Assembly (NCBI RefSeq): GCF_001194135.2
Contig: NC_068998.1
Location: 49,602,259-49,666,258, forward strand
DNA from: Octopus bimaculoides
Taxonomy: Eukaryota
Length of the DNA stretch: 64,000 bases
Direction of reading: 5' to 3'
Made by a program: the position numbers and the translations under genes. Positions 3,724 through 6,700 of this stretch are shown here, piece by piece. Each line of letters begins with the position of its first letter. The stretch's first letter is position 1. The notes under the pieces are model-generated. The model was not told where the DNA came from. It ran no database searches and saw only the letters and a program-made list of their open reading frames with translations.

Positions 3724-6700
3724 TCACACCAAGGTAGATATAATAGGTATCATGAATATGATGTGAGGTTTCATAATGCCAGGCAGGCTAGCGGTCGAAT
3801 TTGCTACGTTAAGAAAATAGAAAAACAATTATATTTTAATGCTCATCAAGCATTTCGATTTCAATGCAATTTTAACTTCATGTCAACAAGATTAATATAT
3901 AAATGCTGATTTATTCTTTGCATGGTTAAATTCATAACAGTATATTTAAAGTTTACGAACTGATTTTTTATTCACCATTAAGGGTTACAGAAAGAGCGAA
4001 CAGACAAGGGGATGCACATAAAACGATAACCGAGGTTAAAAATTTAAAATATAAAATATAATAGATGACAATCCTGAAATGAGAGACGGGTGTAACCCCA
4101 CAAACAACGTTCAATCAGTGAACCCTTTATGATCATTTTCTTCTCCCTTAAGCAGACACATACACTCAACATGCTTGCCAATTTCTTTCATCTTTTCTCA
4201 TATACCCTGAGTGGTAAGTATCTCTCCTCCAGCCTTATTTTCCTTTTAAGGCGGAAAATTTAAAAAATTAACCAAACCAAGGCTGGAGATCTCTGTCACT
4301 ACTCCTTCCATGGGTGTTCTCCACACAACCTCTTTTTCCACAGCCACTACAGACAGAAAACACACCTTCCCTTGCCTGTTCAGAGGGGGCGGTGGAACAA
4401 TCTTTATTATTGTTTAGGAAGGCAGTTATACAATTCCCAAACGTGACAGTAGTTCTTCGACAGAAACTCACAATTCCGAAATACTGTTCCCACCGCATCT
4501 TAGCGAGTTTATCTCGAACTGGTAAGGCTCCTCGGTAACATTGCCAAACCAGGGAGCTTTGAAAGTCATCCAAAGGTCCCAGGAATAAAGCACTGAAGTG
4601 CCTATGCATATACTTCATACAAAATTTCTCAACGAGAGAATATACAGAACCATAAAACAGCTGACTTCCGAAATCGCTTATAATAATTAATTCGTTTTAT
4701 TGGCCACAAGGGCTAATATCAATTAAAAACATATAAGGACAAAGACAGGACGAAGGTTACAAAAGGTTTTGTCCGAAAAGGTAGGAAAGTTCGTCTAAAC
4801 AGAGGAAGAAAACGGAGAAAGATATAAATAAATAGATAAATAAATAAGTAGAACTCCCAAAGGGGGGGGGCGCTTCGAAAAGGCAAAGGTTACACGTGGA
4901 AAAACCCATAAAACCACGGGAGCCTGGTCAGAAAAAATAAGAAAGGGGTATAGAGCCCTTTCTCCTTTTACAATAATGATTTAAATTAGCTAAAATATTT
5001 CGTTTTCCAAGCACCTAAATTTCGTTTTAATGTTAGAGGGACATCGAATCGCATTAAGAAAGTATAACTTCTTTGTCGTGTGAAATATAATTCGTTGATA
5101 TTTCGTTTTTGCTTTATTTACTTTCTACTTTCAAACAATTTAAACACTGAAATAATTTTAAATAACATACCAATGCAGTTATCATGATGAAGCTTGGAGA
5201 AGTGTTTCGCACAGCCATGCTTCACTTTTCCTAAACAGGTTTCATAGTACTCCATACGGCTGCAGAGAATGAAAAAAAAAAAAAAAGAAAAATAGGGAAA
5301 TATACCAGAGGAAATACAATAATCTAGATAATAGTCATTTGCCGTCACAGACAGTACAACATGTCATGCCACTAAAATTAACAGAAATTACCACATGTTC
5401 TTGCAGGAAAAAGGTAAGTTAACTACGAATGTCTATTTTAATTTAAAGTTTAACTTAATTTTATTAATAGCAGTTTTCTCTACATATTGCATTTTTGTAC
5501 ATATTTTGATAATGTTTGTCAAAAAAAGAAACATTTAAAACAAGACACAAACATTCTTCTTTTGATGTATTTATCTAAAGTAAATTAAAATTTACCCAAT
5601 TTTAATTAGCATTTTTGTTCTTTTTCATAAATATATACTTACTCGTGTGCTAGTTCTACACATTTAAAAAAATTTTACTGTCTTAATGTTTTGCGCTCTT
5701 GTCCCATTCTGTATTATTTATATATATGTACTTAGCTACATAAAATGGAAGAGGAATGACACAATCGACCATTGCAGCGAGGCTTCCTTGGTTATTTGAA
5801 CAGATAATGAAAAGGTGTGTGGAGAATGGAGGTCATTCCAGAAAAATTTTGATTTATATAATTATGTGATTGTGTGTTTGTGTGTGTGTGTATGTGTGTG
5901 TGTGTGTGTGTGTGTGTGTGTGTGTGTGTGTGTGTGTGTGTGTGTGTGTGTGTGTGTGTGTGTGTGTGTGTGTGTGAGAGAGAGAGAGAGAGAGAGAGAG
6001 AGAGAGAGAGAAAGAGCGAGAGAAATAGAACGAGAGAGTGTCCCCGTTTGTGAATGTGTTTGTGAGAACGTTTGCTGCCTTCAGCGCTATATCATCAGCT
6101 TCATATGGAAAAATATTCCATCAGCATTACCCAAATGATGATGTCATTGGCTTTAAGATACATCCAAGACTTGGACCTTGTGCTATCTGCCCACATAAAT
6201 CATACCAGCTTCACATAATACAGCCCAATTATTTCACCTCAGTAGGACCGTTTCTTTTTACCATTACACTAAAACACACTAAAGGAGAAACAAACCCCAT
6301 AAATTTCAAGAAATCTTTGGACAATGTTTGGACAATTTCACTTCATTAACAAAAATAGAAAAATACAAGCTGTTGTAATAGAGGAGGTTGTAATAAGAAA
6401 ACGCATACAAACTTGCAGTACTCATTATCGGGTTTCTTTTTAGGAAACAGATCCATAGCTTTTGGGCACACCTTCTTGCCTTCTTCGGGGCAATTTTCTT
6501 GCGCAGTGATCCCTAAAAAGTTTAGACATTTTAAAAATGTTACGTGGCACTGATAGAACATTCGGTGAAATCTTAGCAACTTAAAATTTAAGACATCTCT
6601 TACAGAGATAAAGAAACAATAAAAGTAACGAACATTGAGAGTATAAATGAAGCGGATGGGTTAATGAGTTATGTCAAAAGAAAGAGTTAAAAGGAGAAAG

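Follow-up and report, generated by a model that had tools for sequence, protein, structure and literature searches.

A tandem octopus gene family of small six-cysteine proteins with similarity to the RGM N-terminal domain

Repulsive guidance molecules (RGMs; RGMA/B/C and DRAG-1) are co-receptors whose C-terminal part (RGM_C, a partial vWD domain that undergoes autocleavage at GDPH) binds neogenin. Their N-terminal domain, RGM_N, clamps BMP/GDF ligands in vertebrate RGMs, and we know of it in no other setting than as the ligand-binding head of these co-receptors. The domain, a bundle of three helices with three disulfides, occupies the type-1-receptor site of BMP, and its helix 3 lies at the centre of the contact (PMC7354924). 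Neuritin (CPG15; PF15056, NRN1) resembles the octopus proteins described below in being small, with six cysteines around a C-x8-C-x7-C core, and carries the GPI anchor that is predicted for them. GFR-alpha and GAS1 are helical, disulfide-rich and GPI-anchored. Ly6/uPAR proteins are made as small GPI-anchored precursors from tandem clusters of genes that evolve fast.

Here we analyse a window of 64 kb (64,000 nucleotides) from Octopus bimaculoides. A preliminary description, made from the letters of the window, had compared the cysteine spacing and helical pattern encoded at 5171-6512 with neuritin and RGM_N, had named DUF19 as a further family to be checked, and had suggested a cephalopod expansion of such surface proteins. 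To which of these families, if any, does the domain belong? The explanation that best accounts for the evidence as a whole is a stand-alone RGM_N-like family: homology is probable but unproven, and its function we infer.

The locus and its gene models

Seven paralogous genes of four exons each, g1 to g7, form a tandem array in the window, all on the minus strand (Table 1). Seven co-oriented loci with common exon phases, splice sites and cysteine positions, together with 29 database homologues, are not the product of chance; this is a real gene family. Positions 5171-6512 on the minus strand correspond to exons 2 and 3 of LOC106870879 (g1). Splice sites are canonical (AG/GT) and intron phases identical across the copies of the array, and the exon 1 donor reads G/GTAAGT, in phase 1, in all seven paralogs. 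RefSeq models agree with the gene structures of g1, g2 and g4, the RefSeq start of g1 being an upstream in-frame ATG at 7377. Both g1 and g2 sit within one segmental duplication.

Table 1. Exons and core motifs of the array, in window coordinates
Feature	Position	Strand	Content
g1 exon 1	7302..7341	-	MKTITLFLALFIF + G; signal peptide core; starts at ATG conserved in all paralogs
g1 exon 2	6413..6512	-	(G)ITAQENCPEEGKKVCPKAMDLFPKKKPDNEYC + AA; Cys1-Cys3, predicted helix 1, conserved YP..PD..YC loop
g1 exon 3	5171..5259	-	C + RMEYYETCLGKVKHGCAKHFSKLHHDNCI + G; Cys4-Cys6, predicted helices 2-3
g1 exon 4	3724..3803	-	(A)NSTASLPGIMKPHIIFMIPIISTLV, stop; matches RefSeq model P0030
g2 (LOC106870881)	14819..17812	-	exons 1-4: 17812-17773, 16758-16659, 15438-15350, 14898-14819; encoded tail NSTDRLHGIMKSHIILIVSIISALV, stop
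g3	23106..26866	-	exons 1-3: 26866-26830, 24859-24766, 23194-23106
g4 (LOC128249883)	31374..34509	-	exons 1-4: 34509-34473, 33722-33623, 32818-32730, 31477-31374; exon 4 encodes DKILMPVTLISNVGSFKSVSKYNIFAPLIIATWM, stop
g5	38082..40513	-	exons 1-3: 40513-40477, 39931-39832, 38170-38082; weak last-exon candidate 37563-37490
g6	47120..53222	-	exons 1-3: 53222-53186, 49880-49787, 48592-48505 (exon 3 ends in phase 0); candidate last exon 47179-47120 (IIFYRIFLAAAVIILLAHM, stop), followed by AATAAA
g7	55536..59334	-	exon 1 59334-59298; exon 3 56948-56861; candidate last exon 55595-55536 (TLLYSIIISAAVIIVFSRM, stop)
Motif CNRVDYYASC	~15.4/16.7 kb	-	same exon 2/3 junction in g2
Motif CMRLKNYRNC	~23.1/24.8 kb	-	same exon 2/3 junction in g3
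Motif CRRMQIFQVC	~32.8/33.7 kb	-	same exon 2/3 junction in g4
Motif CKRLQVYESC	~38.1/39.9 kb	-	same exon 2/3 junction in g5
Motif CRTYRELPYC	48.5/49.8 kb	-	paralog g6
Further paralog	56.9 kb	-	g7

Some exons escaped our search. The last exon of g3 was sought and not located, that of g5 was not confidently located, and exon 2 of g7 was not found and probably falls within a run of N, an assembly gap, at 58252-58662. An alternative last exon for g1 and g2 at about 2925, ending in GQVPVSN and a stop, was rejected in favour of RefSeq exon 4 (3803-3724 and 14898-14819), which encodes a hydrophobic tail. Transcript contigs were sought by exact-protein look-ups, which brought back only genome records.

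The domain becomes visible only after splicing. The phase-2 junction between exons 2 and 3 of g1, TGC AA/C CGT, yields ...EYC-N-RMEYYETC, so the motif CNRMEYYETC is correct only in the spliced product. All five core motifs quoted in the preliminary description (this one and the first four in Table 1) proved correct, each at the exon 2/3 junction of one paralog. Spliced g1 reads C-x7-C-x16-C-x8-C-x7-C-x11-C, within a family framework of C-x7-C-x14..16-C-x8-C-x7-C-x11-C, and all six cysteines are invariant across the six complete window copies.

Among 1.84e9 proteins, 29 representative homologues were found at E<=1e-3 (12 of them at E<=1e-10), some carrying 2-9 tandem domains. All 29 come from the genus Octopus and the same search found no homologue outside it; the term 'cephalopod expansion' is therefore too broad. 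The family is under-annotated: every member bears the name 'uncharacterized protein LOC...', and g3, g5, g6 and g7, four of the window's seven copies, lack a protein model in the collections searched. No paper mentions the locus or accession names, and general literature searches likewise returned nothing on the family.

Mean column entropy is highest in helix 3 (3.24 bits) and lowest in the YP..PD loop (2.36 bits). The dN/dS ratio is about 0.75 for the mature domain of g1 and g2 and about 0.6 for exon 3 of g6 and g7; between g1 and g2, dN is 0.34, no lower than the divergence of their introns (about 0.22).

Predicted fold and profile similarity

An AlphaFold2 model of the g1 domain, built on a 48-sequence family alignment (pLDDT 91.2, pTM 0.77), has helices at 7-21, 31-44 and 50-62, and an independent model of g5 from a 6-sequence alignment has three helices too. 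The predictions are neither beta-rich nor knottin-like, in line with the helical domain first proposed, and a three-helix disulfide domain is very probable. The structural check that had been suggested, a Foldseek search of the PDB with AlphaFold models, yielded no significant match and no RGM chain: the shallow model gave 0 matches and the good model 4 meaningless ones (E 5.9-9.6).

Profile searches did single out RGM_N. When 48 family domains were scanned against 24,736 Pfam families, 23 of the 48 single domains matched RGM_N, below its cut-off of 24.2 bits (best E 2.2e-4). Every other family was matched by one domain, which makes RGM_N the sole recurrent family. Shuffles that preserved the cysteines gave no RGM_N match (0/48). 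On a local RGM HMM real domains scored 6.8 bits and cysteine-fixed shuffles 1.2 bits; shuffling also removes helical periodicity, and the excess may partly reflect 'helical with this Cys spacing' and not ancestry. On RGM_N, g1 and g2 obtain 14.8-16.3 bits, under the cut-off, which no single-domain window protein reaches. Two full-length relatives exceed it, P0002 with four repeats (37.9 bits) and P0008 with two (29.1 bits, covering profile positions 6-56 of 70), but these scores sum mutually homologous repeats and are not independent evidence.

Searches in other directions gave the same family. The octopus profile, run against 177,635 PDB sequences, found at E<1 only chains of the RGMB N-terminal domain (E 0.04-0.6), and RGMB scores 17.2 bits on the octopus family HMM. 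HHalign against three RGM N-terminal domains aligned 31 columns, in register over C3-C5, with P 3.5e-4 and a probability of 37 %. The alignment is essentially limited to C3-x8-C4-x7-C5, some 25-31 columns, where identities beyond the cysteines recur as D-x-x-[YF]-C-x-x-L-x-x-Y-x-x-C. A word-indexed protein search, in a database thin for animals, returned nothing for the g1 domain and one bird protein for the RGMB N-terminal domain. There was no match to the RGM_C domain, GDPH occurs in no family member, and the RGD motif is absent.

Is this similarity ancestry or convergence? An octopod-specific helical cysteine-rich family that arose independently of RGM would have nothing in common with it beyond amphipathic helices and the C-x8-C-x7-C spacing. 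Such a family might tentatively be pictured as small GPI-anchored or secreted proteins with a life-style akin to that of Ly6/uPAR-type modulators. Convergence would fit the sub-threshold score of every single domain, the confinement of the similarity to 25-31 columns between differing flanking spacings, the Foldseek searches without RGM, and the failure to find a homologue beyond Octopus. It is harder to reconcile with the fact that RGM_N, predicted beforehand, was the sole recurrent or top match among all the Pfam families and PDB sequences searched, that the signal was lost in cysteine-fixed shuffles, that identities other than cysteine recur, and that the alignment of one domain spans positions 6-56 of the 70 in the profile. 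We regard convergence as possible but rather unlikely. We favour common ancestry with RGM_N, the octopus domain being a divergent stand-alone derivative of it, and put the probability at roughly 0.55.

Of the three families first put forward, then, RGM_N gained support from profile matches, tempered by the Foldseek result, and neuritin and DUF19 gained none. The comparison strings themselves were sound: RGMA chain 4uhy_C reads C-x8-C-x7-C, and the neuritin sequence used, which contains CTYWEDFHSC-x7-C, is recognised by Pfam NRN1 with 134 bits. Homology to neuritin would explain the same core, the six cysteines and a GPI anchor, and when neuritin is aligned to the family HMM, C3-C5 fall in register. 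However, none of the 48 domains matches NRN1 at E<=10, HHalign gives neuritin a probability of 1 % with the alignment out of register, and neuritin scores 6.9 bits on the family HMM, against 17.2 for RGMB. The outer spacings of this neuritin sequence (x9/x24/x27) also differ from those of the octopus domain, and the profile similarity lies only in the cysteine spacing. A neuritin homologue is thus extremely improbable. DUF19 (PF01579) was matched by 0 of the 48 domains. As a separate observation, neuritin itself weakly matches DUF19 (E 0.0088).

The GDNF-receptor/GAS1 (GFR-alpha-type) class of helical cysteine-rich domains enters through the UniRef label of P0009 (A0A0L8GPX5), 'GDNF/GAS1 domain-containing protein', the sole trace of that class; its members would also suit a helical, disulfide-rich, GPI-anchored protein. 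Yet Pfam GDNF (PF02351) is matched neither by P0009 nor by any of the 48 domains, and the PDB profile search retrieved no GFR-alpha or GAS1 chain at E<=10, which makes membership very unlikely. Neuritin, DUF19 and GDNF/GAS1 were all rejected as the identity of the family for want of profile support.

Precursors and C-terminal tails

The product of each gene consists of a signal peptide and one domain of about 60 residues, and the proteins end about 25 residues past the domain. In g1, g2 and g4 the domain is followed by a Ser/Asn spacer and a hydrophobic C-terminus of 10-12 residues. Exon 4 of g1 encodes a region of small residues with an N-glycosylation site, a spacer and a 12-residue hydrophobic end like that of a GPI signal; where the anchor would probably be attached, both g1 and g2 carry N-S-T and small residues. 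Judged heuristically, all three proteins follow the rules for GPI signals (small residues, spacer, hydrophobic stretch, uncharged end). A spacer and a hydrophobic C-terminus that lacks charges and is not long enough to form a transmembrane helix are also found in 12-14 of the 29 representative models. A GPI anchor, as in the two families of the preliminary comparison, accords with these annotated C-termini, which resemble attachment signals by the same heuristic rules, and we think it fairly likely that family proteins are so anchored.

A hydrophobic tail is missing from about half of the representative models, among them P0010, P0012 and P0031. This could mean that the proteins are mainly secreted effectors, such as pheromones, saliva or venom components or antimicrobial peptides, and that the tails are annotation artefacts; tandem expansion, fast protein evolution and small disulfide-rich precursors would be in keeping with such a role. 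Against it, g1 and g2 share a conserved tail exon, terminal exons of the same kind occur in g4 and, as candidates, in g6 and g7, and tailed models are numerous, independent and drawn from three species. We consider this explanation distinctly unlikely.

A proposed role and comparison with known systems

If the RGM_N-like reading is right, the precursor would enter the ER, where the domain would fold as a three-helix bundle held by three disulfides and the C-terminal signal would be exchanged for a GPI anchor. A helical module of about 7 kDa would then be exposed on the outside of the plasma membrane, and relatives without the tail would be secreted. By analogy, the proteins may bind secreted ligands while tethered to the membrane, as co-receptors or as decoys. 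Helix 3 is shortened, and no other part of the domain varies as much, so the paralogs probably recognise diversified partners, not necessarily BMPs; that the octopus domain binds BMP or GDF ligands, an idea drawn from the analogy with RGM, is doubtful. A fuller scenario, just as speculative, is that octopods freed the BMP-binding N-terminal module of RGM from its neogenin-binding C-terminal domain and expanded it to at least 24 fast-diversifying genes, GPI-anchored or in some cases multi-domain and secreted. Their products might make up a variable repertoire that binds TGF-beta-superfamily signals or other cues at the membrane, as tethered traps or co-receptors, and that serves a sensory or cell-recognition system specific to the lineage.

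Should the link to RGM_N be true, we know of no earlier case in which the BMP-binding head of RGM co-receptors stands alone and has been massively duplicated. The family would then also place another lineage-specific surface-protein family beside the few known octopus expansions, such as those of protocadherins and zinc fingers. With their small size, confidently predicted fold and plausible membrane anchor, the proteins are experimentally tractable.

In organisation the family is a functional analogue of Ly6/uPAR proteins, with a signal peptide, a cysteine-rich domain and a putative GPI signal encoded in fast-evolving tandem clusters; the Ly6/uPAR fold, however, is the all-beta three-finger fold, whereas the octopus domain is predicted to be all-helical. 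The RGM N-terminal domain (PF06535; RGMA, RGMB and hemojuvelin; PDB 4UHZ, 4UHY and 6Z3J) is closer. Both domains have about 60-70 residues and six cysteines, and their C-x8-C-x7-C core is identical. Counted from Cys3, both carry an acidic residue at -3, a hydrophobic one at +3 and an aromatic one at +6. The octopus domain is predicted to have three helices, the number solved for RGM, and the RGM parent protein is GPI-anchored where the octopus proteins carry a putative signal. The flanking spacings do differ, as the preliminary description had said: the RGMB framework is C-x4-C-x22-C-x8-C-x7-C-x21-C, and the octopus outer spacings are x7, x14-16 and x11. The octopus helix 3 is about half the RGM length and hypervariable. 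Unlike RGM, the octopus proteins have no C-terminal (partial vWD) domain, GDPH autocleavage site or RGD; their domain stands alone or in 2-9 repeats, and it belongs to a large tandem family as against 1-3 RGM genes.

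Seven tandem genes and their annotation

The window, a stretch of AT-rich eukaryotic DNA interspersed with microsatellites and assembly gaps, has its counterpart in chromosome record CM046618.1 at ~49.6 Mb, in reverse orientation, as exact protein look-ups showed. Seven paralogs (g1-g7) in the same orientation emerged from scanning all six frames for the motif, from tblastn with the exon peptides and from a search for exons that code for signal peptides. Their exon 1 encodes MK and 10-11 hydrophobic residues and ends in G/GT(A/G)AGT, phase 1; exon 2 carries Cys1-Cys3 and stops after the second base of a codon, and Cys4-Cys6 come from exon 3. 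In g1, the junction of exons 2 and 3 (TGC AA/C CGT) creates ...EYC-N-RMEYYETC, so the spliced motif read there in the preliminary description is correct. The cysteine framework is C-x7-C-x14..16-C-x8-C-x7-C-x11-C; the six cysteines and one phenylalanine are invariant across the six complete copies.

Coordinates and annotation of features in the window
Feature	Position	Strand	Remarks
g1			RefSeq model LOC106870879; tail ...DNCIANSTASLPGIMKPHIIFMIPIISTLV, then stop
g1, exon 3 end to exon 2 start	5171-6512	minus	canonical splice sites on both exons
g2			RefSeq model LOC106870881
g3	23106-26866	minus	
g4			RefSeq model LOC128249883
g5	38082-40513	minus	
g6	47120-53222	minus	
g7	55536-59334	minus	exon 2 not found within the window; probably in N gap 58252-58662
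RefSeq start versus downstream ATG, g1	7377 versus 7341		
RefSeq start versus downstream ATG, g2	17947 versus 17812		
Segmental duplication containing g1 and g2	2806-11655 versus 13934-22631		~9 kb
Similar block downstream of exon 4 of g1/g2	2700-3260 versus 13860-14390		88.6 % identical; AATAAA and acceptor-like site
Trinucleotide array, (AGC)n type	49528-49769		long; g6 intron 2, directly after exon 2, adjoining assembly gap 48828-49508
Direct duplicate	53893-54039 versus 54674-54819		147 bp, 97 % identical, either side of N gap 54040-54508; looks like an assembly artefact at the gap edge
Inverted repeat pair	26474-26746, 31720-31992	plus, minus	273 bp, 93 % identical, ~5 kb apart, between g3 exon 1 and g4 exon 4; may be transposable-element ends or two inverted copies of one repeat
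Dispersed SINE-like repeat	20612-20791, 22216-22361, 37424-37527, 38573-38664, 48252-48429, 63696-63831	both	~90-180 bp, 76-86 % identity; in introns and between genes

How many of these genes are annotated? An exhaustive HMMER search of 1.84 billion representative proteins with the window profile returned 29 matches at E<=1e-3, all with Octopus names (O. bimaculoides, O. vulgaris or O. sinensis) and including the RefSeq models of g1, g2 and g4. No protein identical to g3, g5 or g6 was among them, though all three were in the query profile, and g4 is the only called gene in its surrounding 23 kb; four of the seven copies (g3, g5, g6 and g7) therefore seem to be without a protein model in the collections searched. 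All four have canonical splice sites, with exons 1-3 listed as intact but for the missing exon 2 of g7, and are probably unannotated genes. The RefSeq starts of g1 and g2 are upstream in-frame ATGs (MSIFSTKQDLIK-MKTITL...; 147-aa XP_014772605.2). The downstream ATG, which opens the MK-hydrophobic start common to all seven paralogs, is more likely the initiator because a normal signal peptide would result.

The same O. bimaculoides chromosome carries at least 18 annotated family loci. A second group, on another chromosome (a 117 Mb record), consists of multi-domain genes that encode as many as nine domains. Its members P0001/P0032 (LOC128248155) and P0041 (LOC106874482) have nine tandem domains within 540 residues and lack a hydrophobic tail; they make up a branch of their own, which is probably secreted and is also represented in O. 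vulgaris and O. sinensis. The indexed database has thin animal coverage, since the human RGMB N-terminal domain as query returned one bird protein only; the 'Octopus only' distribution is as seen in such databases and is not established. Literature searched by the names of the loci and accessions did not mention them. UniRef calls one relative, P0031 (A0A0L8GPE1), an 'IMS import disulfide relay-system CHCH-CHCH-like Cx9C domain-containing protein'; for a secreted protein this name is almost certainly wrong. Another, P0009 (A0A0L8GPX5), is named 'GDNF/GAS1 domain-containing protein', which Pfam did not reproduce; despite this name, neither Pfam nor PDB profile searches gave GDNF/GAS1 matches.

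Comparison with the RGM N-terminal domain

The preliminary description likened the cysteine spacing and helical pattern to neuritin and to the N-terminal domain of repulsive guidance molecules (RGM_N, PF06535), and also named DUF19. Only RGM_N recurs in searches: it is matched by 23 of 48 family domains (best E 2.2e-4), any other Pfam family by one domain only. Single window domains score 13-16 bits (E 0.012-0.1), and no single domain passes the curated cut-off of 24.2 bits. Two full-length multi-domain relatives lie above it, P0002 at 37.9 bits and P0008 at 29.1 bits, the latter match spanning profile positions 6-56 of 70. Among all 177,635 distinct PDB sequences, the family profile reached E below 1 only for RGMB N-terminal domain chains (0.17, falling to 0.04 with a deeper family profile). 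HHalign against three aligned RGM N-terminal domains, their sequences checked against PDB chains, gave P = 3.5e-4 and a probability of 37 %; the 31 aligned columns keep Cys3-Cys5 in register. For neuritin the HHalign probability was 1 % with the alignment out of register, the family HMM scored 6.9 bits versus 17.2 for RGMB, and none of the 48 family domains matched NRN1. DUF19 had no match in Pfam searches of these domains. The RGM_N-like part of the earlier interpretation thus survives; neuritin and DUF19 drop out.

The main rival explanation is that an octopod-specific helical family converged on a similar cysteine spacing. When cysteines were fixed and the remaining residues shuffled, 0 of 48 sequences matched RGM_N, and real domains averaged 6.8 bits with a local RGM HMM versus 1.2 bits for 1,920 shuffles (29 % of real domains above the 99th percentile), in a control that also removes helical periodicity and with family domains that are mutually non-independent. 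Because such shuffles lose the RGM_N signal, it exceeds cysteine spacing alone. Foldseek, a method that performs weakly on small helical bundles, gave 0 matches against the PDB with a first model and four insignificant, unrelated ones with the pLDDT 91.2 model. We regard convergence as somewhat unlikely, and homology to RGM_N as borderline.

Precursor, predicted fold and divergence

The precursor comprises a signal peptide, one ~60-residue domain and a tail. Small or Asn/Ser residues, a spacer of 5-10 residues and an uncharged hydrophobic C-terminus of 10-12 residues make up this tail in g1, g2 and g4, as well as in 12-14 of the 29 representative models. By heuristic standards such a tail fits a GPI-attachment signal, as the likeness to GPI-anchored proteins had suggested, and it does not reach the length of a transmembrane helix. 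Candidate terminal exons of g6 and g7 code for the hydrophobic tail alone, followed by AATAAA. About half of the 29 models lack a tail; their products would be secreted.

AlphaFold2 predicts a three-helix bundle, at pLDDT 76 from six window sequences and at pLDDT 91.2 and pTM 0.77 from the 48 family domains (helices 7-21, 31-44 and 50-62). This agrees with the earlier helical reading, not with a beta-rich or knottin fold. Apart from the cysteines, conserved positions gather in the loop between helices 1 and 2 and at the beginning of helix 2 (Y-P-x3-P-D-x2-Y-C-x-R-L), and no element varies more than helix 3.

Within the g1/g2 duplication, non-coding DNA is 74-94 % identical versus only ~51-59 % protein-level identity for mature-domain exons; the coding parts therefore diverged at least as fast as introns. 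In small samples, dN is 0.34 and dS 0.45 for the g1/g2 mature domain (intron divergence ~0.22), and 0.26 and 0.44 for g6/g7 exon 3. Such divergence points to weak constraint or to diversification on a fixed cysteine scaffold, positive selection not being proven. The similar block downstream of exon 4 is probably 3' UTR; RefSeq models place exon 4 away from its acceptor-like site.

Possible function and relation to RGMs

RGMs bind the finger region of BMP2/GDF5 through their N-terminal domain, a bundle of three helices and three disulfides that lies over the type-1-receptor epitope; helix 3 forms the core of the interface (PMC7354924). Function in the Octopus family we infer entirely: the domain would form three disulfides, be displayed at the surface on a GPI anchor and, by analogy with RGMs, bind a ligand. 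As helix 3 is short and variable, we would expect the paralogs to have diversified partners; binding of BMP/GDF ligands seems decidedly improbable. As a new family, it lends itself readily to testing.

The spacing of the outer cysteines counts against the link: it is C-x4-C-x22-C...C-x21-C in RGMs and C-x7-C-x14..16-C ... C-x11-C in the Octopus proteins. The latter are not RGMs, because they lack the RGM C-terminal domain, the GDPH cleavage site and the RGD motif; at most they would carry an RGM_N-like module. They are best described as an uncharacterised, under-annotated Octopus family of stand-alone RGM_N-like domains.
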